A stretch of 63,395 bases of DNA, filler included, from Dimorphilus gyrociliatus (taxonomy: Eukaryota; Animalia; Annelida): NCBI GenBank assembly GCA_904063045.1. It is 4 parts of 4 records of this genome, joined end to end, with 100 filler letters (N's around TTAATTAATTAA, not from the genome) between each part and the next. Parts side by side here need not be neighbours in the genome. Positions count along the whole stretch, not along the records: positions 1 to 24,564 come from CAJFCJ010000163.1; 3 more parts are not named here. One strand, written 5' to 3'. Of this stretch, positions 105 through 23,841 are shown in pieces. Below the pieces are notes generated by a model that did no database searches, was not told the DNA's origin, and saw only the letters and a list, made by a program, of their open reading frames with translations. Numbering within the stretch: position 1 is the first letter of the stretch; each line of letters begins with the position of its first letter. The translations under genes and the position numbers were made by a program.

Positions 105-1716
105 TTATTGAATATACTCGCTTCCCAAAAGCTCTTTAAACTTTTCCCTTATTTCACGACATTCCTCTTTATCAACTCCTTTATAATAGACTCTTAGTCT
201 AATTTCTTGAAAATTCTCAGGTAAAAATTTACTAACTCTTTCTTTTTTAAGTTTAAAAGGTTTGTCTGGTTCAGATTTTTTATAGAAAAGGAATTTTTCA
301 ACTGGATTCATATTTTTCATATCTGGAGCAAAATTGAATATGGTTTTGTATTTTGTAAGTAATTCTTTTTTATCTTCTAAATGAAAAGTTAAGATTTCAT
401 CTACTTCTTTCATTTTATCATCATCGCTTACTTCAACAATACACCTGTAAAGTTTCCTTTGATGGATTCTCCTTAAAAGTTGTTGGGCATCTTTCAAATT
501 GTCGTCAGTAGAATAAAGTATTCTTGAAAATATCTCATCAGTAAATTGATTAAAAGCGTCAACATTTTGGCATATTTCACCAAGTTTTACTTCTTCAATT
601 TCTCCTTCTTCATTCTTTATTTTCAATTGAAAATTATCCGTTGCCATGATTAAAGCGTCATACATCCTAAAGAAGAGGGATTGGGGTATTATTCATTGAA
701 AATTGTATTCATTACACTCACATTAACGCTATAGCTTTGCAAGTTTTATGCTGATAAGCTCTCTCATGTAGCTGTAATCTTGTATGGAATAATTCATAAA
801 TGCACTTTGCCTCCTTAATAAAGAAAAACTGGTAAAACTAAGAATATTTTACTTAAGAATAAAATATTATACTTTTTCTCTTAAAGATATTTTAAAATTT
901 TTATCATCTTTATCTTCGGAAACTTTTGCGAATTGAATAAAACGAGAATGATCAAATGATGATCTAATTCCAAGATGATAAGAATCCCTTGCAATGTAAT
1001 CAAACCTATCAACATCTACTCCACTTTCCTTATTCCATATAATTTCATAGAGGAATCTGTAATGACAATTTTGTGTTCAAATTTTCAAATTCTTGACATA
1101 CTAATTAACTTTACTTTCTATTTCTAAATTTCACATCAGTAAATTCTCCAGTTTTTTTACCTAAAATCAAATCTCTAAGAAATTCTCTATCCTTCTCTTG
1201 AAATTGTTCTTTTTCGAATTCTTGTTGTAAATTATTTTCTTGTATGATTTGATCAAATATTTTTACTGCTAATTCCTTTTCATCCATATTGAAGTCACGT
1301 CTAAATTTCTCTCGAAAATCAGCAAGTAGAGGTGCATTTGCCAAATTTCTGCAAAGACCTCCCAAAGACACTAGAAGTATATCTTTTTCATCGAACCATT
1401 TAACGTCAGTTGTTTTAAGCGCTCTAAGCAGTTTAGTTGCTAAATAGCATGTTCCTAAACTATGTTCGAAACTGGTATGAGTAGCAGATGGATAAACAAA
1501 ATGACAAGGTCCGAGTTGTTTAATATAACGCAAACGTTGAAATTGAGGCGTGTCAATGACTTTGATAAGTAGAGGATGGAATTCTAAATTTTTGTATATT
1601 ATCTTCGATAGATTTATATATTAAACAATAAAAAAATATACAAACCCATGTGACCATGAACAGCATCATTAAAAACTTTCTTTCCATCTCCAAAATGGAT
1701 TGACAATCGTTTTTTA
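105..1716 (-). CDS. SAMHD1: SAMHD1-like HD-domain protein without SAM domain, predicted catalytically dead; exons about 1646-1716, 1115-1583, 873-1056, 722-813, 105-666
   Basis: Spliced translation KVFNDAVHGHM/EFHPLLIKVIDTPQFQRLRYIKQLG...FEHSLG...FLYEIIWNKESGVDVDRFDYIARDSYHLG...ELFHTRLQLHERAYQHK...RLRVYYK is colinear with SAMHD1. Four in-phase GT-AG introns of 55-62 bp. The start codon is not resolved. Confidence 0.9.
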
Positions 1717-1822
1717 ATTATATATTTTATTTATATATCTCATTGTTTTCAACAAATAATTTGACCTCTTTTTTTATAACACTGCTGATAATAATAATCA
1801 TATTTATCTATCAAAAAAAATA

Positions 1823-1830
1823 TCACGTGA
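1823..1830. promoter_or_regulatory. TCACGTGA E-box palindrome upstream of the SAMHD1-like gene (also at 11008-11015 and 23982-23989)
   Basis: Exact 8-mer in GC-poor intergenic DNA; two of the three copies lie just 5' of a gene. Function is inferred only. Confidence 0.3.
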
Positions 1831-2008
1831 CCTGAATAATTTTCATAAATGTATTTCTTTGTTTTATTAATACAGCAAATGGGAGAATGTTTTCTTTGGC
1901 TAAAAGCATTATTTATAATGAATAGCATTTCTGAGTATATATCATTAATGATAGTTTATATCTTCCTCTCTCTTTCAGTTGAAGAAAATAGAAAATTTAA
2001 ATTTGAAA

Positions 2009-2916
2009 ATGAATAGAACAAACATAACTGGTATAGTTGAATTTGGAGAAATAGAATATATACTACTATTAACATTGTATTTTAGTCTCTTCTCTTTGGG
2101 AATATTACTCAATACTCTTATACTATTGATTATTTTAAAAAATAGACAGATCATTAAATCAATTGTAATATTTATTCCAGCAATAACCATTGCAGATATT
2201 TGTATTTTAATCTGGAATATTGCTGAATCAATTATAAGGGTATCAGTTGATCTGGAAAGTATACAACCAGTTTTATGTATTTTAACATATTTGTTAAAAG
2301 TAATTTTTTATGTTCAATCCCAAATTTATTTATTATTTTGTTTTATTTATAGATTTATTATGATTAAATATCCTTTACATTATGATAGATATTTCACTAA
2401 TTGCAGATCATTTTTTACTATTTTTCTTATTATTCTATTCTCATTTATCTTTTGTCTTTTTCCATGTTATATTCCAATGTTTGGCTATAGAAAATATGCA
2501 ATTTGTCAAGGTTATATGGTTTATAAAAATGAATATTTTTTTATATATCAAACTATTTTCCTTCCAAATATATTTGGAGCTTTAGTTCTACATTCAAAAC
2601 TTTTGAAATTGGCTAAAAACATGCAAATGATATACAAAAACAAACAAATAGGACTAAAAATATCTCCAAATCCTCTAAAGCAACTTTAATACAATTAGTC
2701 CTAATGGCTTCTCTTTGGATGTTATATTCTTTAACATTTGTTATATATTTCTACTATCCAACTGCAACGACAATAAAAATTGTAAACAGTGCAAATATTA
2801 TAATTGTACTTCAATCTGTAATTAACCCTATAATAGCAATAATTGGAAATTCTTCAATTAAACACTCCATCTATAATCTCTTTAAACAAAATAGAGTGAC
2901 ATCCAGAAATATTTAA
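2009..2916 (+). CDS. Rhodopsin-like (class A) GPCR with one frameshift at A-run 2615-2619
   Basis: Seven hydrophobic segments, N-terminal N-x-T sequon, YRFIMIKYPLHY (DRY region) and INPII (NPxxY-like). Adding one A joins the two ORFs as LAKKHANDIQKQ...KATLIQLVLMASLW. Confidence 0.75.
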
Positions 2917-3478
2917 TCAATTTTCTAAGGTAAAGAATCTCAATAGAATGTTTTGGCTTTCAAATTTTTTACCCACATTTTCAGAGTTCAGCTTTCAAAA
3001 AAAGTCTTGTAAAATTCTACTTTAATGTCATTGACCTCAACTAGAGTTTGGATAAATATAGAAGTATTGTAGGATATACTTTGAATATTCAATTATCAAA
3101 AATTCTATGCTGTTCAATGATTAACTTTGTACAATGAAAGCAGAAAATTTACATATCTTTAAATATTTTTGATTAAAGCAAGGAGATTTCAATGGCAAAA
3201 GAAAGTAGGTCATACTCTTGAAATAGTTGAAGTTTGTAGATTCAATTAAATTTAACTGTTTTTGGATAAAATCATCTGGCAGTATATTAAAGAATGCTTT
3301 GAATGTATATTTAATAAGTTTAGAGAATTTATGATTAATTAATATCTGGCAGTTATTGACTAATAAACAAAGAATGTTAAATGGGAGCAGGAGAAACTTT
3401 TCCCACATGATAAACTCAGGAACACTTTTCTTCTTCCAATATCTATGTTAAATTAATATTGATTATTTGGAATTTTAT

Positions 3479-4189
3479 TCAGCAACTGGCTATAAAAAAA
3501 TATGTTGGAACACTCATGACAAACTTTCCGTACGATGATACTTTGAAGCCAACTTCTTCTACAATATTTACAAGTTTGTCTGAATCAATGCAATAATGAG
3601 CAAATGTTTTTTCCCCTACTTGATAATTTTGCTGTTTTACAGCTCCGTAATCGTATAATACGCCACCTGGATTCAATTTATTGTATACATTTTTTAACGA
3701 CTTCATCAAATCTTCCTCTGTTTTACAAGCAGACAGCAACACGAAATTCATGGAGATTACATCATACTTACTATCGTCATTTGGTATTATTTGATGATTG
3801 AGCAAATCCGACTGTGAAATTTTCTTAACACTTTTCAATGCATTTTCATTCATTTCGTTAATATCACGACCTTCTAAAGCTGAAACATACTGAACCAAAG
3901 TTCTTATGTTGTCTAGGTCATCTACAGTTTTCCATTTTTTCAAGCAGTCGATATTAACATCAGAGAAGTCGGATAATGTAATGTCATCGAATTTGATACT
4001 CGCTGAAAAAATTCCAATAGGTGAAGGACCACTCCCAATTTCCAAATATTTACCACTTTTTGTCAAACTCTTTATAAATCTATGAAGTTGAAATAAATTT
4101 GCGAAATTCTCTATATCAGGTTGTCTCCAATTGTTTATAAAATTTTCAGGCCATTCTTCATTGTTATAATCTTCTCTAAATGATGTCAT
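3479..4189 (-). CDS. NNMT/PNMT/TEMT-family SAM-dependent methyltransferase
   Basis: LEIGSGPSPIGIFSAS, ITLSDFSDVN..CLKKW, YDVISMNFVL, LNPGGVL and YQVGEKTF motifs. Confidence 0.85.
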   Translation of the reverse strand: MTSFREDYNNEEWPENFINNWRQPDIENFANLFQLHRFIKSLTKSGKYLEIGSGPSPIGIFSASIKFDDITLSDFSDVNIDCLKKWKTVDDLDNIRTLVQYVSALEGRDINEMNENALKSVKKISQSDLLNHQIIPNDDSKYDVISMNFVLLSACKTEEDLMKSLKNVYNKLNPGGVLYDYGAVKQQNYQVGEKTFAHYCIDSDKLVNIVEEVGFKVSSYGKFVMSVPTYFFIASC

Positions 4190-4869
4190 TTTAGTGATTC
4201 AAAATTTTGTCCTAATTTAAAGATTTAAGGTTGAACTTTTATACAAAAAAGTTTTTTTTTTATAAAAGATTCAGAGCGCCACCTAGTTTTATTCTAGATG
4301 AATGTTATATTATCTTTTTAAAATGTTGCAAAATGACGTATTGACGGAATTACTTTATGTAAAGCACATTTGAATGTCATGAGAAAGATTTACTATGTAA
4401 CTGTGTATAGGCAGGTTGCCAAATTGTTCCTAGTTCAATGTTAATATAGAGTTAGTTACTTGGGGAGAGGAAATTTACCTTACAAAATGAATATGCATTA
4501 TACTTTAAGCCTAGTGCATAATAGAACATCATTCATTAAGAAAAACGATAATTTTAAAGCTTAGACAACTAAAGAAATTAATTAAAAAAAATAAGCCTAT
4601 ATTTTAGAATTACATCCCCCTCTCTCCATGCCTCTCTCTCTCTCTTAGCATATTGTATTTTAAGTGCAGGAGTGATTTATAAAGTTTAGTCATTGGCATG
4701 TGTTGAAAGTTGTCTTTTAAATGGTTTATTGAAAACATAGAAAGGCATGAAAAAAATATTTTAAAATATTTCACAACACCTCCAAAAGAATCACAGAAAT
4801 ATTTTGCATGTTGAATTAGATACTTAAATATAAGATTTCTATGTCAATCTAAGCAGTATGATTCACAGA

Positions 4870-5380
4870 TAACTTTGAAAATTCCATTGCTGTTTTGATA
4901 CTTTTCTTTCATTTCCGGAATCATCGTTTCAAGAATTTTGTAAGTATTAAGTAAAGGTCAAGGACAATTTAATGAATTTATTTAATATACCACTAACTTG
5001 GGATTAATCATTAAGGTAAAACTGTAGATATCTCCAACAAACATCTATTATGCTAATGATCAATTAATAGCATGAATATTCGATAATATTGATTTTTTGT
5101 AACTATAATAAACTTTAGGAAATTCAAATTCTTCACATTGGAAAATTTTCTTGATTTCGTAGAAATATTTATCAACTGTACAGATTTATTACAAAAACAT
5201 TCCAATTCCCCATCCATCTTCGCTACAGAAGTATTTAAATACTTTATCACCAGCACCAACAGGTATAGTAGCAGAGTAACTTTTTCCTATAATTTTCAAT
5301 ATATAGGAATTTTTTCTCAAAAATATAAAAATAAGATCTTTTAGTTATTTTACATACATTTTGGAGTCTAGAATGGACAC
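4870..5380 (-). pseudogene. Decayed 5' fragment of the BC-box LRR family
   Basis: Frameshifted pieces SRLQNVCKI, IPVGAGDKVFKY and ELECFCNKSVQLINISTKSRKFSNVKNLNFLK align by eye with the N-terminus of the 21607 gene (EMEFFKFKRISLSKISLNWKKFKNIINFEFLK). Confidence 0.5.
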
Positions 5381-5553
5381 CGAACGAATATAGTTGGAAT
5401 ACTTTTTGAAAATAACCAATACCATACATGTTTTTAGTACATATATTATATCCGATAGATGGCGTTATTAATACTACTTATTACAAGATTATGTAATAAT
5501 AAATGTATGTGTGTTTGTGCATTGAAATTTCCAAAATATGAAAAAAAAAATTT

Positions 5554-7468
5554 TTATTCCAACTCAGAAACATAGAACAAAGCGAACGAAGTTAATTTAA
5601 TATTATTTTCACTGTAGATAGATTGCAATAATTCAACTGCAACAGATTGTCCTTGTTGCAGTTGTATTAAACCGCCTCTACTGACTGTATCGTATGACGT
5701 ATGAATTGTTACTTGACGCCATAATATTAATCTTATATTAAAATTAACAGTTATATAGACAATTCCAAAACGTTGTGGATATAATCCAATAGAGACGTCG
5801 GCATAGTAGAGTCCAGTTTTTGGTACTTTGTACGAACGATCATTCGCACTCCATGATGAAGTTGTGTCAATTGATATATCTTCAAATAATATTCTCCTTC
5901 TAACTACGTTATTAACGCTTTTTTGTTTTATAGGCAAAAAATATAGGCCTATTTTGGGATGTATCCAATTGGAAACCTGTTAAATAAGTTTCCAAATAGT
6001 TTGTTGACCTCGATTCACCTTCCAATAGTTTTAAACCAATATTATCGCCAGCGTTTAATTGGATAATAAATCCTCTGGACGCTTGATCAAAGGCGTTAAG
6101 GGCTCTATGATTTCTTATAATAGATAATTCGGATTTGTTGTTACGATTGTTAATGTCCAGCGTTAACCACGCCTTTTCTTTAGCATTGAAGCCTATACCA
6201 ATTGTTTATATAGTATAGACCGCTGGTCGAAATTCTTAACTGTCTTTTATCGGCTGTTGGCACAACTCCTCTTAACGTTACAACTCTTTCAAACGGTAAT
6301 AAACCAGTAGTCCCGTTTGATGATGTAACTCTACCAACAAAAAAACCATTGTTTGTCTCATAACGAAACGTAGTCCACGACATATGTTGACCGGAAGTTG
6401 AACTTGCTATTGGAGTAAGAAAATCATTGTAAATGTATGGATTAAATAGAGGCGTAAGTGAAAATAATCCAGATCTAGCTGATATATCCGATGTAGCTGA
6501 TATAGAAGTTTGTACAGTTAACCTTGAAAGGGCAATGTCAACACCAAAATCTTTTCATTATTAGATTAGCTGAGTGTGAATTTCTTGTTGAAATTGATAT
6601 TGATGTAAAGAAAAAATCCTTGTTGTTCAACATTCAATGAATTTGTTGTTGTGTTAAAAAAATTTCCTTGTTCTGTTGAAATTACTTGCCATTTTACTCT
6701 TCCCTCTGGAATTCTCGTATTTCTTACTATACTTACCATAGACGATTGAGAATTTGCCACGTTACAAGGAGGATTTAAACATATATCAACGTCAACCGAA
6801 CTTCCGGGACAATCGTCACCTCCGTTCATTGGAGGTGGACTATCGCAATTTCTTGTACGAATTCGAAGACCATCTCCGCAGGATGGTTCGCAAGAACTCC
6901 AATCCGACCATGTTGACCAACCTCCAGATATTGGACATTTAGCTTCGTCAGGCGTAACGCAAATTCTAGTATTGCAATCTCTTACATTCAATGATGGACT
7001 AAAATAATATCCATCCGGACATTGCTGTGGCCATGAAACTCCATTATAACAATGGTAATACTGTCTACAATCATTTTCATTAGGCAATGTAACATTTTGT
7101 CTATTTGCACAAATGGAATTTTTTAAAAAACAAGGTTCCTCCAAAGATTCTTTAGCGTTAATACCTTCCAAACATTCTGAACTGTGAACATCAGGTTTTA
7201 ATATTAATGATGAATTGCCTCCAGGACAATCGGCTTCGGCTGGTTCAACGCACAATGAATATTCGCAATTGGTTAATGAAACAGTGAAAAATAGTCCTGG
7301 TGGACATTGTTGAGGATAGGCAACGCCATTTATACAATGATAATATACACCGCAAAACGAAGGATCAGCAAAAGCTCCATCAATTGGTTTCAAATTGGAA
7401 TTAAGTGGACAATTAAATTGCGATAGACCGGAAGCGGCCAATGAAGATACTAAATGGAATAGTGTCAT
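5554..7468 (-). CDS. Secreted multidomain protein: signal peptide, 2x chitin-binding peritrophin-A (CBM14), TSP1, 3x C1q-like; four +1 homopolymer frameshifts
   Basis: CGVYYHCINGVAYPQQCPPGLFF and CRQYYHCYNGVSWPQQCPDGYYF (CBM14); WSTWSDWSSCEPSCGDGLRIRTRNC (TSP1); three C1q-like blocks with GFF/GLYY and ARSG/ASRG/VSRG motifs. One ORF results from removing single bases at 6611-6616, 6552-6555, 6205-6207 and 5919-5924. Confidence 0.8.
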
Positions 7469-11089: not shown

Positions 11090-12372
11090 ATGGAAGATGG
11101 CTTTTTGAACATTTCAACGCTTTTAGTTTTTATACTTTTCATTGATTTTCAATGTTATAGTAAGTTTGTTGTATTTTTTTAAAAGAAAAGAATAGGCCTA
11201 ATTAACAATACTATCTTCCTCCTTTTTCAGACACGGTTAAACTTTCGCAGACGGTTTGTGAAAATCGTTCAATAAACATTATTTGTCCTGTTAAGCAGGT
11301 AATCTCCATAAATAACGTAATTTATGGAAGACAAAAAGGAGATTTGAAGACGTGTCATAGGCATTTTTTGAGCAAAAGTCCAATTTATGAAAGAATATTG
11401 GGAAATGTTTGCAGAGCAAAGAATGGAGATGAAATAGTAAGTAACAACTGCAATGGCAAAAGATTTTGTTTAGTTAAAGCTAAGAATAAAGTATTTGGGG
11501 ATCCATGCATTGGAATTCATAAATATTTAACAATAAACTATGAATGTATTCGAGGTAAACAATGCAATTTTTTCCAACTATAAACTCAAACATTTCATTT
11601 TTTAGACGCAAATAGAAAAGTTGCATGCGAACATAAAACATTGAATTTGTTGTGTCCATTTGGAAAAGTCATTAAAATAAAATCTGCTTTCTATGGAAGA
11701 CAAAAGAAAGATTTTACGATTTGCAAATTCAAGAATTTTTCGAAAGTAAAAAAGAGAATTAATGAGAAAAGTTGCAATTCTTCTAAATCATATTTGAAAG
11801 TATCTCAGTTGTGTAACAAGAGACAAAGTTGTAGTGTTAGGGCAAAAAATTCCGTCTTTGGAGATCCTTGTGTTGGAATTTTTAAATATTTACAAGTTGA
11901 GTATGTTTGTGAACTTCCAGTACCAATAACAACAACAACAACAACAACTATGATACCAACTTCTATCCCACAAAATTATCTTCATTGTAAGTTTCAAATT
12001 TAAAATTTCAACTAATGTTCAACATTTTCTGTTTGCTTTTCAAGATAAAATTCCAATTACTGTTTGTCGACACTTTTTGTTCATTTAAATTGTCCGCTCG
12101 GATCAAAAATTGTTATTAATAATGTTTTCCATGGAAATGAAGACAAGAAGAGGAAAAATGAAGAGGAAAATTGCTCTCATCAATTTTTAAAAGAATTTTA
12201 TTCTAAAAACGATATTCATCTATGCGAATCGATAGATGAAACGAAAATGATAGCTGAAAGATGCAATCAGAGACAAACGTGCGCCATACTAGCAGATCGT
12301 TATTCCACTCAATATTCCTGTTGTAATCATTTCAACTACTTTACAATTATCTATTCCTGTTTCAAAATTTAA
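11090..12372 (+). CDS. Rhamnose/galactose-binding SUEL-type lectin with three domains and a Thr-rich linker
   Basis: Signal exon 11090-11159; domains CENRSINIICP...YGR...FGDPCIGIHKYLTINYEC and CEHKTLNLLCP...YGR...FGDPCVGIFKYLQVEYVC; a divergent third domain needs a 1-bp correction at 12047-12050. Confidence 0.85.
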
Positions 12373-12416
12373 CAATAATAACAGAAAGTAGGTCACTAAC
12401 AAAAAAATAACAATAC

Positions 12417-13052
12417 TGTACTGCTCTTGCTGGCAAAATCTATGCGTTTGCAAGTTATAACAATACTGGTTCTACTCAAACCTTTAAACAAATGTTTAAA
12501 TTAAAACGGTTTATTCGCAATAATAATACTTAAGCAAGTAACGATATGAGAGTTCGATAGCAGAGTAGATAGTTTGTAAAAGCAGGTTGCCAAATTACCA
12601 AACTGTCTTCTAATGTTGAGGAGTAGATGGATGGTTCCAGTGGAGGTTGTTTCCAGATGACTTTCCCAGGTCCTTGGGTCCAGATGGAAGCTGCATGCCA
12701 AATGAGAATAATGAGGATTTATATACTTTGAGGTTTGTCTCTGACATCCAATCATCACTTTACAGTTGCCGAAATGTGTAGTTCATATTTATCTTTAGTA
12801 ACAGGATGTTACAAGGTTCAACATTTAGGAAGGTTAATTGAATTATAACTTGGCCACACTTTAGGCAAGTTAATTAAATTATAACTTGGCCAAACCTTTA
12901 TTGGTAATTAAAGATGAGCCTTCAAGCTGACTAATCAGACTTATGTTTGGCCAATGTTATAGCATTTTCTTGCGTAGGTTTTAAGATGTACATGTATATG
13001 TTGCATAAAATAATAGAGTTCAAGCATGTAAAATATAACCAAAGTTGTACAA
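12417..13052 (+). repeat. 636-bp leader segment, near-identical to 47977-48612 and its mirror 55609-56245
   Basis: Same ends (tgtactgctc...gttgtacaa) and same length in two contigs; contains a duplicated ttaattRaattataacttggcca motif and a splice-acceptor-like ttttcttgcgtag. Confidence 0.9.
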
Positions 13053-16000
13053 TGCATTGACCTATCTAACTGTGGGTTGGGATCAGATATTGGTAATACT
13101 GCTGGTAAAGCAATTGGAAAGCTAAGTGACCTTACTGTGTTACAACTCTCAAATAATCCTCTGGGAACTGAAGTAGGAAAAAATATATTTGAAAATATTA
13201 AAGGAACTTGCACAAAATTAATCCAGATTGCTTTTGACAACTGTGGATTTGGGTCTGAAATTGGCTCAATTGTTGGTGAAGCAATAGGTAAACAAACTCA
13301 ACTATCACTCCTGTATTTGCAACATAATGAAATTGGAACTATAGTCGGAAAGTATATTTTTGAAAATATTAAATTTAACTGCACAAAATTGAGCAAAATT
13401 GCTTTTGACAACTGTGGATTTGATTCTGCAATTGGTCCAATAGTTGGGGAAGCAATAGGTAAACAAACTCAACTAACAGAACTTTTTCTGCAAGATAATA
13501 AATTTGGAACTATAGTTGGAAAGCATATTTTTGAAAATATTAAATTTAACTGTACACATTTGTCAACAATTTGTCTGAATAATTGTGGATTACAATCAGA
13601 AATTGGTCCAATAGTTGGTGAAGTAATTGGTAAGCAAACAGAGCTTACTGGAATATCTTTGACAAAAAATCCAATTGGAACAGAAGTTGGCATTGGAATC
13701 TTTGAAAACATTAAAAGAAATTGCACAAAATTATCAAGTATTTGCTTAAATAACTGTGGAATAGAATCACAAATTGGCCTGGTAATTGGTGAAGCAATAG
13801 GCAAGCAAAAACATCTCACTGCACTGGATCTGTCAAACAATCCACTTGGAACAGAAGTGGGAAAAAATTTAATTGAAAATCTTAAAGCAAATTGCACAAG
13901 ATTATCAGAAATATATCTAAACAACTGTGGATTTGATTCAAATATTGGACCCGCTATTGGTGAAGCAATAGGCAAGCAAAAACAATTAAGTGTCCTTGAC
14001 ATTGGAAACAATGCAGTGGGATCTGTAGTTGGAAGAAATATATTTGAAAACATTAAAGATAATTGTAAGCAAATTAATTAAAATAAATCTAATAAAATGT
14101 GATCTTGAATCAAATATTGGTGAAGCTATTGTTGAAGCAATTGGAAAGCAAAAACAGCTCTCTCAACTGAATCTTTCAGACAATCCACTTGGGACCGAAG
14201 TGGGAAAAAATTTATTTGAAAATATCAAAACAAATTGCACCAGATTATCAGAAATATATCTAAACAACTGTAGATTTGATTCAAATATTGGATGTACTAT
14301 TGCTGAAGCAATAGGTAAACTCAAAGGACTCAAAATATTGACACTTCAAGGTAATTTACTTGGATCAGACATTGGAAAAAATATTTTTGAAAATATTAAA
14401 GCAAATTGTAGACAATTTTTTGGAATTGATTTTGAGAATTGTGGTTTTGACTCAAATGTAGGTTCAGTTGTTGGTGAAGCAATTGGAGAGCAAGAAAGGT
14501 TGTCTAAGTTATATCTAGGTCACAACCATTTTGGCTCAGAAGTTGGAAAACTTATTTTTGAAAATATTGAAAAGAATTGCAGACAATTAACTATTTTGTC
14601 TTTAGCCAATTGTGCATTTGAGCCAAACATTGGTAGCATTATAGGAAAAGCTATTGGGAAGCTTAAAGAACTTATCTACCTGAATCTGAATGATAATCAG
14701 TTTGGATATGAAGCTGGGAAAAGTATTTTTGAAAATATCAAAAATTCTTGTATAAAATTGACACAGTTGGAGCTTGGTAATTGTGGATTTAATTCAGATA
14801 TTGGTTGCGTTATAGGAGAGGCAATTGGAAAACAAACTAAACTCACTACATTGTATCTTCAAAATAATCAACTTGGAACAGAAGTGGGCAGACATATTTT
14901 TGAAAATATAAAGTTGAATTGCACAGAATTAACAACAATTTGTTTTGTTTCATGTGAGTTTGCACCAAATATTGGTTGTGGTATAGGAGATGCAGTTGGG
15001 AAACAAAAGAAACTTACAAGATTGTACCTTTATAATAATATATTGGGATCAGTAGTTGCGATGAGTATTTTTGAAAATATTAAGTTGAATTGCACACAAT
15101 TAACTTTAATTAATCTTTCTTTTTGTGAACTAGAATCAAACATTGGTTTTGTCATTGGAGATGCAATTGGAAAACAAAAAGGACTTAAATGGTTGAATCT
15201 TGAAGGTAATAAATTGGGATCAGAAGTTGGAAAGAGTATCTTTGAAAATATTAAGTTGAATTGCTCAGATTTAAGTGCAATCAGTCTTGCTTCTTGTGAA
15301 CTAGAATCAAACATTGGTTGCGTTATTGGAGATGCAATTGGACGACAAACCAACCTTACCACATTGCATCTGTATAATAATTCACTTGGAACAGAAGTAG
15401 GCAGACATTTTTTTGAAAATATTAAGTTGAATTGCAATGGGTTAACTACAATTAATCTGGCTTCTTGTGCATTTGAATCAAACATTGGCTGTGTCATTGG
15501 AGATGCAATTGGAAAACAAAAAGGACTTAAATGGTTGAATCTTGAAGGTAATAAATTGGGATCAGAAGTTGGAAAGAGTATCTTTGAAAATATTAAGTTG
15601 AATTGCTCAGATTTAAGTACAATCAATCTTGCTTCTTGTGAACTAGAATCAAACATTGGCTGTGTCATTGGAGATGCAATTGGAAAACAAACTGGACTCC
15701 AATGGTTGAAGCTTGAAAATAATAAAATTGGTTCAGAAGTTGGAAAGAGTATATTTGAAAATATTAAGTTGAATTGTAGGTATTTAATAACAATTAGTTT
15801 TGCTTCTTGTGAACTAGAATCAAACATTGGTTGTGTTATTGGAGATGCAATTGGAAAACAGAGAGAACTTACTTATTTGGACATTTCACATAATAATTTG
15901 GGATCAGAAGTTGGAAGATATATCTTTGAAAATATTAAAGAAAATTGCACTAAATTATCCATATTAAAACTAGAAAACTGTAACTTTAAATCAGATATTG

Positions 16001-16350
16001 GTTCTGTTGTTGGTGAGGCAATTGGTAAACAAATAAGTCTAACTGCATTAAGTCTTCAAGATAATCCTCTTGAAACCAAAGTTGGAAAAAGTATCTTTGA
16101 GAATATTAAGATAAACTGCAGGAATTTGTCAAAAATTTTATTAAGGAAATGTAACTTTGATTCAAGCATTAGTTTTCTTGCGCTGGAAGCAAGTCAAAAA
16201 CAGAATATGAATGTAGTTTTATCTCTGGATGACAGCTTAATGAAAAGTATAAATGAAAAGCATACCACTGAAGGCGTATCATCAAAGAAATTGCATTCTA
16301 AAGATAGTTTGAAGAAAAAGAATCGAACAAAAATATGCCTACTGTTGTGA
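13053..16350 (+). CDS. Intronless ribonuclease-inhibitor-type LRR protein with about 37 alternating 28/29-aa repeats and a C-terminal polybasic + CLLL CaaX; +1 frameshift at 14067-14068; 5' junction disrupted
   Basis: 57-aa (171-bp) period alternating xxNC and xxNN/HN/DN repeats; 18 Asn-type and 19 Cys-type repeats counted; ends KKKNRTKICLLL*. Confidence 0.85.
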
Positions 16351-16369: not shown

Positions 16370-16570
16370 CCTCTACAATTTTAGCAGTTGATTATTCAGT
16401 TCTTAAAGTATCAGTTTGTGTGTTCAAACTTGCTTGTTTAGAAGTAGAAACTAATTTTTTTCAATAAATTTTTTTATGCAAAATACTTGTAATTTTGTTA
16501 AAATTTCTGGATGGACTTGAAGGGATCTATTTGTTTGAACACTTTGGCAAATTGGTGAATGAGAGTGGTT
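16370..16570 (-). repeat. Diverged copy of the trailer repeat just after the LRR-CaaX stop
   Basis: The reverse complement matches 49440-49640 (ccaaagt...aaatagaacc...agtttctaXttctaaacaag...aagaactg). Confidence 0.65.
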
Positions 16571-17917: not shown

Positions 17918-19888
17918 ATGATTAATGTTGTATTTTTTCATAAAAATATATCTATATCTTTTAAAAGAGTTCATTCTCTGTATCTATTGATTTTCGTATT
18001 ATTTTTATTCTCTTTTAAACAACATAATACTGGCTCTACTATTAGATATGAAATAACAGCTAAGACTAATGCTACTCAAAAGAAAACTTTTCAAATTGTT
18101 AAACTTTTAGCTGAGAAACCGGATTGTGAGAGACCAAAGATGGAATTATGGCCAAATGGTGTTAATAAAATAAATCTAAAATTCAAGCCTGTCATCTGTG
18201 ATCCTCCTTCATCGGAATGGTTTGTTATTAGTAATAGAAAAATATTATTTACAACAACTGCAAAGAAGTATATTTCGAATAATAGCGTTTCTTGTGAATT
18301 ACATGTTCTTGATGTTAATGAGTATTTAGAAAGAAACCTTAGATTTAAGGGTAGATTGTATAATATACAAACTTATAAGAATATCATAAATGGAATGAAA
18401 GTTCCTTCTGATGTCTTCTCAATTCATTGCTCTAAAAGCAGTGAATCAAAATATATATTCGAAAATATATATTTAACGATTAAACCTCATAAAAATATTA
18501 CTTTAAATCCACCGACACCTAATCCATCATCTGGTGAGCCCAAATGGAATATTTTAATTTGCTGTTTCGATTCTTTATCAAGACTCTCCTGGCAAAGATT
18601 TCTACCTAAAACAATTAAAGCATTTAAGGATATTGGAGGAGTTTGGTTTGATAAATCTAACATTATCGATTTTGGAACGCTAGGATCATTTATACCTCTT
18701 CTAACAGGAAAATTTCAGCGTGAACTCCACAAGGCTCTTCGTGGTCAGAAAGGAGCCAGAAGTATTGATGATTATCCATGGATTTGGGAAGAGTTAAAAC
18801 ATCAAAACTATTCTACACTCTTAGCAGATTATAGTACTTTCAATTTTAAATTACTGGGATTTAATACAACTCCTACTCATCACTATGGAAGACCATTTTT
18901 CTTGGCTGCTATGAAAAATAGGAGAAAGCATAAGAGATATTGTCTAAAATCAAAGATTAGACTAGAAATACTGCAAAATTATATTGAAGAATTTTGGAAT
19001 ACTTATAGTAAGAATCCAAAAATGGCTCTTGCGAATTACGAAGAAATGTCACATGACAGTTTTGGCGATATCAGGGCAGCAGATAAAATACAAGCTGATT
19101 GGCTGAAAAGAATGTTAGAATCTAAAAGATTGGAAAATACAATATTTATTTTAATGTCTGATCATGGCGGAAGATTTGGAGAGCTCAGAAAAATGAAACA
19201 AGCTGAATGGGAAATGCTTAATCCCTATTTTGGTGTAAGACTGCCTGACAGTTTTAAACAACTACATCCAATAGAATCAACATACTTAGAAAGCAATAGA
19301 GATGTTTTAATAACTACTTTAGATATCCATGCTACATTTAGCCATATCATCAGATTTGCTACAAATGATTCAGTTAAACTAGAAGTTCATAGTCGGTCTA
19401 AGAGCCTACTGACACTGCTACCAAAAAATCGAACATGCTCAGCTGCAAATGTTCAAAAGAGATTCTGTCTCTGCCATACATATAAAAAAGTTAATGTATC
19501 TGACACTGTTGTTCTCAATGTAACTAAAGTTCTTTTAAGAAACATGACAGATTCCTTGAAACCAATAAGACAACTTTGCAAACCTTTGCAGTTGAAAAGC
19601 ATACTTGAAGCATATAAAGTTGATAGGTTTGTTCCAGGAAAAAATCTTTTAAACACCATCAATAAAGTTTACAAAGTCAGTTTCTTAGTAGATTTCTTCT
19701 ATGGACAATATGAATCATATGTTTCTGTGACATTTGATATCAGCCATACTGTTATATTAAATATAGAAATACAAGAATTAAATAGAATGGATATGTATGG
19801 AGATCAGGCTAACTGCATAGAAAGAGATCATCCTTGGTTAGCTCCCTATTGTTATTGCTTAAATTATAAAAGGAACACAATTGTCTAA
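17918..19888 (+). CDS. DUF229-family (alkaline phosphatase/sulfatase-like) type II membrane protein
   Basis: N-terminal TM, NILICCFDSLSRLSWQRFLPKT, EMSHD, ILMSDHGGRFG, RTCSAANV..RFCLC, and C-terminal YCYC. Confidence 0.85.
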   Translation: MINVVFFHKNISISFKRVHSLYLLIFVLFLFSFKQHNTGSTIRYEITAKTNATQKKTFQIVKLLAEKPDCERPKMELWPNGVNKINLKFKPVICDPPSSEWFVISNRKILFTTTAKKYISNNSVSCELHVLDVNEYLERNLRFKGRLYNIQTYKNIINGMKVPSDVFSIHCSKSSESKYIFENIYLTIKPHKNITLNPPTPNPSSGEPKWNILICCFDSLSRLSWQRFLPKTIKAFKDIGGVWFDKSNIIDFGTLGSFIPLLTGKFQRELHKALRGQKGARSIDDYPWIWEELKHQNYSTLLADYSTFNFKLLGFNTTPTHHYGRPFFLAAMKNRRKHKRYCLKSKIRLEILQNYIEEFWNTYSKNPKMALANYEEMSHDSFGDIRAADKIQADWLKRMLESKRLENTIFILMSDHGGRFGELRKMKQAEWEMLNPYFGVRLPDSFKQLHPIESTYLESNRDVLITTLDIHATFSHIIRFATNDSVKLEVHSRSKSLLTLLPKNRTCSAANVQKRFCLCHTYKKVNVSDTVVLNVTKVLLRNMTDSLKPIRQLCKPLQLKSILEAYKVDRFVPGKNLLNTINKVYKVSFLVDFFYGQYESYVSVTFDISHTVILNIEIQELNRMDMYGDQANCIERDHPWLAPYCYCLNYKRNTIV

Positions 19889-21606
19889 TTTTTTTTACAG
19901 CTATACTAAAAAATATGTTAAAGTGTAAGGTTTTGATGATTGGATTCTTTTCAAGAATAAATATCTCACTGTCTGATTTTAAACACTAAAACTTACATTC
20001 CATATTTCACTACTTGTAAATGAGTCACTAGTTCTGAACTCAGAAGTTTATTCAAAAGAACTATTTTTCTATCTGCTATTGGAGAGACTGTATTACTTTC
20101 TTTTATGTTATAGCCTATAGTCTAGTCCAAAAAAATTGACAATTGTATTTTCTAATATTCCTTTCCTTTCTCTATTCAAGCCTGCCATTTTCTTGGAAGT
20201 AGGTTGATATTGTTCTGATAAAAAGGAGAATGGCTTTCTCCTTAGAAAATCTTTGATTCAAATTATCATAATGGACCCCTCTGATATGGTCCTTCAATCT
20301 CCCAAAAAGATAATAGTCAGTATTGGAAGATTATTGAAAGGCAAACGTCACTGCTTATTTCCCTAAAAGAATTTGTGGGAAAAAGATATGTGGGAAATAG
20401 TGACATTTAGAAATATTTTATGCTTTGATATCAGTGCCATAAAATGTTGTCAATGTAATTTTACTGTCTAGTTACGTCTTAAGTTATGAATAAAACTAGG
20501 CAATTTAATGTTTTCAAAGATAGTTTTATTCAATGCAGATACGAATTATTTAAATATATAAAAAAGTGGTTTCTATTTTCTATCCTATACTGCAACTACA
20601 TCTTTAAGGACCACATGCCATTTTTTAACAAGGTTCAGAAATGTATACTTCCAGTAGATCTGGAATATTCTCTTTAACTCCACTTTTCAAACCTCAAATA
20701 GAACAAGCTTTCAACTCTATGGCTGTTGGTAGCAAAAATGGTTATCAAACTTCCTGGTCTGGTTTTCTTTGTGAATCTAATAGTTTTTTTTTATGAACAT
20801 TATTGAATGCTGATAGAAGTGAATTGGCAGTGTCAGCTGCAGGTTGGTATTTTTTCAAATTTGGAACTGGTTACCCATCCCGGGACAAATGAGTAGTCAG
20901 CCTAACAATAAATAATGATACAGCATAAATGGAAAGATCTCTAGCCAAGGGTCATACCTCTAAAGAAAATAGTCAAGGCTCTAGAGGAGCAATTGCTCGA
21001 TGAAATGAAAAGTCCAGCATTTTATGCCTATAGAACAACAAATTTAATGACATTGTCAAGAGTAAAATTTGATTTTGATCAAGTTGTTCTAGATACAAAT
21101 TCTGGTTACCAACCATAAAAAAAAACATATAAAGTGGCAATTTCCGGTTTATAATAAATTGATGTTCCTGTTGGAATATGGGGATTTTCACAATTTGTAA
21201 TATATATAATAGTAAATAGTGAACAAAAGCTAGGTATGCAAAGACTGACTGCTCAAACAGGTTATCAGACAATGAGCAGAGACATAATGGACATAATTTT
21301 AATAGTTTAGAATGGCACTTATTTTTTGTTCCATAAGACAATACATTATTCAGATATCCAGTCAATATTTGCAATATATCGTCTGCTCTACAGAATTTGT
21401 AAGCGGCGCGGGGGCGAGAGCCACTCTACAACACCTTTAGGCCTATTCGCGATAGAAAAAACACCTGTCAAAAATCATTCTAATTTAACAATGTCCATAT
21501 TAAGGATAGGAGAGTGACAAAAAAAAACATATCGAAAGTTTTATTGTGGAATTCTTGGATCATTGAGATTTTAATAAAGTATAAATCTTTATTTCAAATA
21601 GACAAA

Positions 21607-23841
21607 ATGGCGGTTGATTCGTTAAAGGTGGCTTGTTTAAAAATAATTCGAAAAAATTTAGCATACCTTGCAAAAATTTGCCAAGACAAAGGATTAGCTT
21701 TACCGCAAACAGTTGGAGAAATGATACTAGAATTTTCAAATATCAATGATTCGCATTCATTCATCGAAAACGAAATGGAATTTTTCAAATTTAAAAGAAT
21801 AAGTTTATCAAAAATATCTTTAAATTGGAAAAAATTTAAAAATATAATAAATTTTGAATTTTTAAAAAATCAACCAATCAAATCATTAGAATTGGATGGA
21901 AGTTTTAATTTGAATAAATTGTATATAAATGAAAATATTGAAAGGATATCAACAACTTTTAATCCATATTTCAATTTGCAATTTTTAATAAAATTTCTAC
22001 CTCAATGTACTCAACTTCAGTCATTTGAAATTGATTTGAACACGTGTTCAAAATTTAAAATGGATAATCTTTTTAGAAATATTATTAAAGGTTTAAGGAG
22101 ATCATCGTCCGAATTGAAAGAATTAATTTTACTCAATTATGAAATAACGATAATAGAGGAAGAAGAGCAACTCAATCAATTATTGGTAAAATGTTCCAAA
22201 TTAGAGACTTTCCACCTAAATAAACTTCCTTTGACAGATTGCCAAATTCTTTTTTCTGGATTATCAACATTAAATCATACATTAACAAATTTAAATCTTC
22301 AATTAGATTATAAACAACTGGATAATCTTACAGAATTCTTGGGAAGGTGCTCAAAAATTCAAATATTTCAACTTTGTTTTATCCAATCCGTATTGTTCAC
22401 AGAACCATGGCTACCGCAAATTGTTGATAGTTTGCAATTATCATTGGGAAATTTCAAAGAATTTGTATTGAAAACTAATTTGTCCTTGACCTCTGATGAT
22501 GAGAAAAGTTTGGGAAATTTCTTAGAAAATGCTCCAAATATTGAAAAATTCCATTTAGAAAAGTCACTCAATTCAGGAGATGGGTTTTTCTATTCTAGAA
22601 ATAATGGACAAAGCGATATCAGTCCCATCTATACTGGTCTGAAAGCTTCGCAAAACACCTTGAAAGAAATCTATTTGACTGAAAGTCTTAAAACAAATTT
22701 AATAATTAGGGAATTTGGATTAACATTGCAGTATTGCGTAAATCTTTCTACAATATTTGTATCATTTTGCGGTGTTATGCTAAAAGATGAATTTAAGGAA
22801 ATCTGCAATGGTTTAGAAGCATGTTCTGAGAGCCTAGAGCGTATTACATTTGAACATATTTTTCTAAGAATAGAACAGATTAAATGGTTGAGTAGTGCTT
22901 GTGAAAATTGTTTTCGCCTCTCTTCATTCCAGTTGTACGAAAGATCATCCAGATTAAAAAATGAATTCCCCTCATTTGTTGGAGTAGGGAATTTCTTCCA
23001 GTTAGATGTTCTAGGTGGAAGTCAATTTGCTGCAAATGGAGGTTTTGAAATATTTTTAACCAGTTTTATAACATTTAAACCAATGCTCAGCAATCTTCAA
23101 TTGGAAAACTTTGTGCTTACCCCAGCAAAAGCTGAGAGATTGGGTTTTTATTTACAGTCTTGCAGACATCTGTCTCATCTCAACCTAAAAGGAAATTTAA
23201 ATATGGGAAATGGATTACTTAAAATACTGAATGCATTAAAATCTAGGTCAGAAATAATAAAAAGTCTCAATTTTGAAGAGTGCCATTTGACCAGAGAGCA
23301 AGGCTATTGGTTGAGTAATTTTCTAAATGATTGTACAAACTTGGAATATTTAAATTTGAATTATAACAGATTTTTAAAAACAGCAATGGCAAACATTTTA
23401 AATTCAGTGAAAATGTGCAAAAATCTTTGTTATTTATCTCTTATCAACTGTTGTTTAGAGAGCGATGATGATATATCTTCTTTGATAAATTTACTCCAAA
23501 ATCTTACAAATGTTGATAAACTTTATCTATCATTTGATAACCTGAAAGAAGAACAATTTGAAGATATCTCTGTTGGATTGAAATGCTCAAAACAAAGCTT
23601 ACAAGTTCTTTTTCTAGAATTTCCACAAAAATTTAGTTTAAGTAAAAATTCTGTAGAAAATTTTTGTCAAACATTAAAAAAATTAACATCACTGCAAAAA
23701 TTTAATATAAAATATAATCAAATAGAAAATATCACTTTGCAGTGTTCATTGCAGTATCTAAGGTCAGCTTTTAAAAATTCTTCATTTACGATTAATGAAG
23801 AAAATATTGTATGTTTTGTAAATGAATTTCCAAATTACTGA
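21607..23841 (+). CDS. Intronless LRR protein with N-terminal BC-box and Cul2-box (ZYG11/ZER1/PRAME-like architecture)
   Basis: MAVDSLKVACLKII fits (S/T/P)LxxxCxxx(I/V/L/A); LPQTVGEMIL resembles the Cul2 box; followed by RI-type LRRs (LSHLNLKGN, LEYLNLNYN). Confidence 0.7.
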   Translation: MAVDSLKVACLKIIRKNLAYLAKICQDKGLALPQTVGEMILEFSNINDSHSFIENEMEFFKFKRISLSKISLNWKKFKNIINFEFLKNQPIKSLELDGSFNLNKLYINENIERISTTFNPYFNLQFLIKFLPQCTQLQSFEIDLNTCSKFKMDNLFRNIIKGLRRSSSELKELILLNYEITIIEEEEQLNQLLVKCSKLETFHLNKLPLTDCQILFSGLSTLNHTLTNLNLQLDYKQLDNLTEFLGRCSKIQIFQLCFIQSVLFTEPWLPQIVDSLQLSLGNFKEFVLKTNLSLTSDDEKSLGNFLENAPNIEKFHLEKSLNSGDGFFYSRNNGQSDISPIYTGLKASQNTLKEIYLTESLKTNLIIREFGLTLQYCVNLSTIFVSFCGVMLKDEFKEICNGLEACSESLERITFEHIFLRIEQIKWLSSACENCFRLSSFQLYERSSRLKNEFPSFVGVGNFFQLDVLGGSQFAANGGFEIFLTSFITFKPMLSNLQLENFVLTPAKAERLGFYLQSCRHLSHLNLKGNLNMGNGLLKILNALKSRSEIIKSLNFEECHLTREQGYWLSNFLNDCTNLEYLNLNYNRFLKTAMANILNSVKMCKNLCYLSLINCCLESDDDISSLINLLQNLTNVDKLYLSFDNLKEEQFEDISVGLKCSKQSLQVLFLEFPQKFSLSKNSVENFCQTLKKLTSLQKFNIKYNQIENITLQCSLQYLRSAFKNSSFTINEENIVCFVNEFPNY

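Follow-up and report, generated by a model that had tools for sequence, protein, structure and literature searches.

Animal NACHT-LRR receptors (NLRs) such as NLRP3, NLRP5, NLRP14 and the NLRC3-like proteins carry a leucine-rich repeat (LRR) array of the ribonuclease inhibitor (RI) type at the C-terminus of a P-loop NACHT protein, and they belong to large multigene families with duplication of units inside the array. The origin and evolution of NLRs in animals are the subject of PMC3879445. The ribonuclease inhibitor itself (RNH1) is a stand-alone inhibitor built from alternating 28- and 29-amino-acid (aa) repeats of A and B type, with Cys or Asn at a conserved position. NLR expansion has reportedly taken place in the annelid Capitella, and NOD1/2 and NLRP3 bind membranes by palmitoylation or through a polybasic region. 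We know of no NLR with a polybasic CaaX ending; a polybasic stretch followed by CLLL, as in Rac1, is the classical substrate pattern of geranylgeranyltransferase I (GGTase-I), with a plasma-membrane targeting signal. Here we describe a gene of the annelid Dimorphilus gyrociliatus (assembly GCA_904063045.1) in which a very long RI-type array and such an ending are found together, within a window (the whole stretch of DNA that was analyzed) of 63,395 nucleotides.

The array lies between 13032 and 16350 on the plus strand of contig C163 (CAJFCJ010000163.1), which supplies the first 24,564 bp of the window, has ~29% G+C and belongs to an assembly of 77.9 Mb in 349 contigs. An initial annotation had read it as a prenylated, LRR-only cytosolic sensor or inhibitor with an architecture that it did not recognize. 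Our analysis argues instead, with a probability of about 75%, that the stretch is the C-terminal LRR domain, the gene-specific tail and the 3′ untranslated region of an NLR gene, severed from its NACHT domain and most likely a truncated duplicate or pseudogene, not a free-standing LRR protein.

The repeat array and its relatives

Two long open frames lie between 13032 and 16350, the first at 13077-14081 and the second, in the next frame, at 14029-16350. The two pieces on either side of the break between them were searched and folded separately, and they were joined solely in scripts that counted repeat columns; read by script with a mark at the break, both frames together give 1105 codons. Tandem Repeats Finder reports a 171-nt period at 13149-16110, with a 342-nt super-period in the 3′ half. 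The encoded array begins with 5 leader residues, after which 18 successive units, each exactly 57 aa long and free of indels, lead to one degenerate capping unit and a non-repeat end of 45 aa. Units 1-6 occupy 13032-14072 (+) in frame 3, which opens after a stop codon at 13029-13031 and contains no ATG, and units 7-18 with the degenerate capping repeat occupy 14074-16146 (+) in frame 1. In every unit, a Cys-type repeat of 29 aa precedes an Asn-type repeat of 28 aa (consensus LsxIxLxxCxFxSxIGxvIGeAIGKQxx-LtxLxLxxNxlGtEVGKxIFENIKxNCtx), which makes ~37 LRRs altogether and confirms both the strict 28/29 alternation and the repeat number of the initial annotation. By this alternation and the Cys/Asn pattern, the array is of the RI type.

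The columns that differ from one unit to the next are the x positions of LxxIxLxx and LxxLxLxx, on the concave face, and the helices hardly vary; at the DNA level, units 13 and 15 share 94% identity. LRR recognition surfaces that expand by duplicating units usually look like this.

Pfam found LRR families only in the array, and phmmer against the PDB matched it to ribonuclease inhibitor and to the LRRs of NLRP1/2/3/5/9/14, with E values of 1e-14 to 1e-7. As the initial annotation had stated, no NACHT, TIR or other domain accompanies the array: none was detected by Pfam and sequence comparison on either strand across the 24.5 kb of C163. Among known relatives, RNH1 is the top match by both Foldseek and phmmer, but identity is only 16-19%, RNH1 closes its horseshoe with ~15-16 repeats against the 37 found here, and the context here is that of an NLR. 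The likeness to NLRP LRRs holds for sequence and for fold, although solved NLRs have far shorter and less regular arrays than this one (~37 LRRs, no indel).

For structure prediction, AlphaFold2 was given the 758-aa piece 3′ of the break (14074-16347) together with six paralogue rows, and it returned a long solenoid of 25 strand-helix units with a predicted local distance difference test score (pLDDT) of 87.5 and a predicted template modeling score of 0.74. Foldseek ranked ribonuclease inhibitor and NLRP14/5/3/9 at the top for this model. Ribonuclease inhibitor, however, superposes over just ~470-520 columns, whereas over the full length the model superposes best on superhelical LRRs of the BRI1 type (TMq 0.51-0.54), which agrees with the claim that a flat ring cannot be closed by this number of RI-type repeats. 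The superhelix that the initial annotation had expected of all 37 repeats is thus supported for the 758-aa piece that was modeled.

The array has many relatives within the same genome. At least 100 loci exceed the Pfam NACHT cut-off in the 78-Mb assembly, most of them in open reading frames (ORFs) of 1400-3200 aa and many intronless, with the P-loop near residue 150-200. Over ~700 aa, our array aligns at 38-39% identity with the C-terminal arrays of three intact NACHT-LRR ORFs (L018_2449, L023_2436 and L026_1972), which have the same 57-residue period. Matches in protein databases consist of LRR proteins of D. gyrociliatus (42-57% identity) and one Logan protein only; the precomputed annotation of all homologues includes Pfam PF27087. 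The two closest paralogues, P0001 (57%) and P0004 (51%), are partial NLR models whose N-termini match the middle region of the contig C95 locus described below, and the P0001 locus has a NACHT 1.9 kb upstream. One NLR subfamily of this genome shares the C-terminal ending ...VRNRLG.

A near-identical copy downstream of a NACHT domain

Contig C95 of the same assembly carries a near-identical copy of the array in two blocks. Block A (C163 13052-14191, C95 96083-97221) is 99.9% identical with one gap, and block C (C163 15161-16904, C95 98278-100019) is 99.6% identical. Upstream of block A, C95 has an extra unit, U, and, at ~95857-95910, a solo fragment that equals the last 52 nt of a 635-bp repeat element found next to the array on C163. 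Farther upstream come more LRR units, an irregular LRR region and then P-loop/NACHT ORFs that hold GDAGMGKT (Walker A) and LDGADEL (Walker B). These upstream ORFs are collinear with residues 12-1058 of intact single-ORF NLRs of this genome that exceed the Pfam NACHT cut-off (E 1e-18 to 1e-40), and the gene contains one real 57-nt GT-AG intron at local ~3503-3560. No recognizable CARD, PYD or Death domain was found upstream of the C95 array, a difference from other animal NLRs.

A NACHT upstream in the same gene, by which an NLR is told, is therefore present for the near-identical C95 copy and absent for the C163 copy. Homology to the arrays of NACHT-bearing ORFs, together with the NACHT upstream on C95, indicates that the array is the LRR domain of an NLR family gene; with NACHT-linked relatives throughout, the LRR-only architecture of the initial annotation is not borne out. 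In complete members, a single long ORF encodes a short N-terminal region followed by a P-loop NACHT NTPase, then by helical and irregular LRR parts and finally by the 57-aa-periodic RI-type array, and the gene would belong to a large, lineage-specific annelid NLR family. By analogy with solved NLRs, the array may serve as sensor and as autoinhibitory surface.

The 5′ edge and the frameshift

We propose that the C163 copy was severed from its NACHT, as it begins at the edge of a young 635-bp repeat, lacks a start for 677 codons and carries a real +1 frameshift. The array frame opens only at 13032, the listed ORF starts are TTG and the first in-frame ATG is codon 678, so that 13053, where the initial annotation had placed the start, does not hold as the beginning of a gene. 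The interspersed repeat element (635 bp, 12417-13051, +) directly abuts the first LRR unit. Among 636 candidates in the assembly, at least 40 are full-length copies at 99-100% identity. We also used contigs from public runs, X1 to X4, mapped by position: in X1 the depth over the element is ~3e5 against ~300 in the flanks (~1000-fold), and many contigs end at 12417 and 13051. The element ends read TGTAC...GTACAA, and an internal 36-bp tandem duplication lies at 12824-12895; it has no long terminal inverted repeats, and an Rfam search of it gave a chance-level match only. It resembles a non-autonomous element that was active very recently. An X3 contig crosses from the element into the array at 13023-13473 with 0 mismatches, which shows that this junction is real. 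That the C163 array is without a NACHT follows from the copy beginning at this repeat-element boundary.

The two frames meet at 14071-14073 (+), where an A-run with one extra base produces the +1 frameshift. Where C163 has caaatta, the C95 copy has caatta and so encodes DNCKQLIKINLIKC in a single frame. The extra A is polymorphic among the public-run contigs, being carried by X3 and X4 and missing from X1 and X2, which makes the frameshift a genuine variant and more than a slip of the assembly.

A short intron at 14071 was considered and ruled out. The difference is one extra base only, the first AG comes ~55 nt downstream, splicing would delete part of a repeat, and one A is simply missing from the C95 copy and from the contigs of X1 and X2.

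The C-terminal tail and its CaaX box

After the capping repeat, the frame continues into a non-repeat tail of 67 aa at 16147-16347 (+) that is predicted to be disordered; residues 732-753 of the AlphaFold2 model have pLDDT values below 50. The C-terminus reads ...SLKKKNRTKICLLL, followed by TGA at 16348-16350. The polybasic KKKNRTKI is encoded at 16312-16335 (+) and CLLL at 16336-16347 (+), and the codons TGC CTA CTG TTG TGA at 16336-16350 place Cys at -4, aliphatic residues at -3 and -2 and Leu at -1, directly before the stop. The polybasic tract and CLLL that the initial annotation had noticed are thus truly encoded. Judged by its sequence, KKKNRTKI-CLLL is a textbook CaaX box of the GGTase-I type, with prenylation as a prediction. 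The C-termini of Rho-family GTPases of the Rac1 type have the same layout, with a Lys/Arg-rich stretch just before C-aliphatic-aliphatic-Leu at the extreme end; unlike theirs, the tail described here sits on an LRR solenoid and not on a GTPase, and it is conserved in no paralogue.

The tail matches only three places in the assembly, namely C163, C95 (100%) and contig C91 (60%, with stops), where it reads ...KDTLKKKY*TKICLLL*. The initial annotation had named the absence of a CaaX from paralogues as a refutation of its reading, and none of ~30 paralogue C-termini has one (P0001-P0006, 20 NLR loci, C105, C16 and C169). The polybasic-CLLL ending thus appears to be a private feature of this one gene, represented by C163/C95 and a decayed fragment on C91. 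By a rough estimate from composition, as opposed to a computed value, a chance CaaL with a basic stretch would be unlikely within ~140 paralogues, but not unlikely in a whole proteome scanned after the fact. Actual prenylation of an actual product is, in our judgment, doubtful. Our literature search returned no publication about NLRs of D. gyrociliatus or about prenylation of NLRs; an LRR protein of the BspA type from Entamoeba, with putative CaaX sites (PMC5349171), is no more than a loose parallel.

The C91 locus has an organization of its own. In C91:26785-29949 (local ~1270-1670), an NLR N-terminal piece (FENIFKQYIQYV...) is fused to the tail after a large internal deletion, with in-frame stops, and two copies of the 635-bp element lie ~3 kb from this decayed fragment.

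Transcription and the 3′ end

Downstream of the stop codon, an AATAAA signal at 16463-16468 and an apparent transcript end define a 3′ end at 16463-16485 (+). The X2 and X3 contigs over the array end at 16485 and 16483, 15-17 nt past AATAAA, and the depth of X2-X4 collapses beyond 16532, whereas X1 continues. The X2-X4 contigs also skip stretches of 51-74 nt between the ORFs of a lectin gene upstream of the element, the 51-nt stretch having GT..AG ends; since they skip these stretches and stop at a poly(A) site, X2-X4 behave as RNA. If they are RNA, the array, the tail and the CLLL codons would be part of one unspliced polyadenylated transcript, and in X3 and X4 the transcribed copy would be the frameshifted one that starts in the element. 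From 15804 to 16483/16485 the contigs are collinear, so that a spliced 3′ end, which the initial annotation had named as a threat to its reading of the C-terminus, is not seen.

Alternative explanations

Several observations weigh against a severed NLR gene. The genomic arrangement differs between the two contigs: on C95 the 635-bp element (C163 12417-13052, C95 97220-97855) stands after block A, and block B (C163 14192-15160) is absent, with an unrelated 422 nt in its place. In the NACHT-LRR gene upstream of the C95 array (C95:90000-99999, local 1458-5921), the reading frame changes at least 5 times, mostly at homopolymer runs (Walker B at a T-run and an A-run at local ~5649 are examples), and the P-loop fragment alone scores 19.4 bits with Pfam NACHT, below the cut-off of 26.7 bits. 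This gene is either decaying or poorly polished in the assembly, and no demonstrably intact NACHT-LRR-CLLL ORF was seen. The differences between C163 and C95 in the shared blocks are nearly all single-base indels that resemble consensus errors, and a third shared segment, C163 1-6924, differs from its inverted C95 copy by gaps alone; taken with the frame changes of C95 at homopolymers, they make long-read consensus errors in one or both of these repeat-rich contigs likely. An X1 contig joins an unshifted block A to block B, suggesting that a longer unbroken allele, found in neither contig, may exist. Finally, the runs X1-X4 are labelled 'DNA?' or '?', so the RNA nature of X2-X4 is our own reading of their behavior, and the junction between the lectin gene and the element at 12417 is spanned by no contig.

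The C163 copy could be a recent segmental duplicate at another locus, comprising the element, the array and 554 nt of 3′ flank, or it could be the C95 gene itself, mis-joined or allelic, which we rank as the less likely of the two; it would be NLR-derived in both cases. If the two copies were one gene, and C163 were mis-joined or represented an allelic structural variant, the NACHT would precede the array, the element or its 52-nt remnant would be an insertion in the array, perhaps spliced as a short intron, and the gene would encode a full-length NLR with polybasic-CLLL at its end. The 99.6-99.9% identity with nearly all differences being indels is consistent with this, as is the junction from the element end to 'CIDLSNCGLGSDIG', which C95 also has, immediately downstream from the remaining NLR sequence. 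X1 and X2 contigs join unit U to block A without the frameshift (13220 -> GC -> 13052 in both), and X1 continues into block B. Furthermore, a 49-nt GT...AG stretch over most of the element remnant on C95 would splice in frame, and introns here measure 51-74 nt. However, such splicing was not observed, and removal of the remnant would lose one 28-aa repeat. In an X3 contig, the end of the element still precedes block A, and the frameshift is present. In addition, C163 7000-12416 and 16905-24564 have no other near-identical copy in the assembly, which rules out C163 as a plain haplotig of C95 and means that, short of being chimeric at both ends, it is a locus of its own. A single gene behind both contigs is thus possible, though we hold it to be unlikely.

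While a severed copy remains our preferred explanation for C163, the X1 and X2 contigs point to an intact allele, since they join U to A with no frameshift and, in X1, run on into B. Such an allele might encode a full-length NACHT-LRR receptor with a superhelical RI-type LRR of ~40 repeats and a Rac-like polybasic-CLLL end, which would be geranylgeranylated and survey the inner face of the plasma membrane. We regard this as rather improbable; if true, it would be the first prenyl-anchored NLR.

A short LRR decoy is a poor candidate. Translation from the ATG at codon 678 would give ~428 aa with ~12 LRRs and the CaaX tail, and this putative product might attach to membranes and draw ligands or partners away from the full-length NLR. 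The frame is open in C163 from codon 678 to the stop, downstream of the frameshift, and a transcript is present, but the Met lies inside a repeat helix (VVAMSIFENIK) and not at a domain edge, and a long 5′ leader with many out-of-frame ORFs would come first. In the initial account, the product is a cytosolic LRR-only protein in its own right, ~1100 aa long, whose CLLL would be geranylgeranylated and whose polybasic stretch would keep it at the inner plasma membrane. The CaaX box and basic residues are rightly placed at the very C-terminus of a disordered, linker-like tail, the transcript evidence takes in that tail, and a second NACHT-less, NLR-type LRR ORF at 21514-23841 suggests that LRR-only derivatives may exist here, but with no ATG in 677 codons, a frame that opens inside a repeat element, the frameshift in the copy transcribed in X3/X4, X2-X4 contigs from the upstream lectin exons that do not enter the array, NACHT linkage of all relatives and a CaaX in no paralogue, this account is very improbable.

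Derivation from an NLR gene explains away an apparently new LRR-only architecture and is an ordinary outcome, that of a fragment from an expanded invertebrate NLR family. Nevertheless, one member of this family has gained a textbook polybasic-CaaX end, and if an intact allele is made and prenylated, this would be a new way of placing an NLR on the membrane. A miniature annelid genome of 78 Mb with at least 100 NACHT loci and unusually long, perfectly periodic RI-type arrays is also good material for the study of LRR-array growth by unit duplication, and the long arrays suit structural work on superhelical RI-type LRRs.

Neighboring genes on C163

Upstream of the element, a gene with three SUEL-type (rhamnose/galactose-binding) lectin domains lies at 11234-12417 (+), with lectin-domain ORFs at 11344-12372. 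The X2-X4 contigs leave the lectin exons at 12417 and pass into other sequence, a 30-mer of which is absent from both C163 and the whole assembly. A lectin-LRR fusion gene was ruled out, since these contigs depart at 12417 and never enter the array.

Immediately downstream of the LRR gene, an intronless ORF of 656 aa at 17918-19888 (+) matches DUF229 (sulfatase-like) with an E value of 4.5e-83. The NACHT-less ORF at 21514-23841 (+) encodes 775 aa, has no Pfam match and is homologous (E 6e-36) to the LRR region, residues ~1277-1840, of NACHT-LRR ORFs such as L014_2173. At the other end of the contig, C163 1-6924 is an inverted duplicate of C95 81901-88824, with 99.8% identity and 12 differences, all of them gaps.

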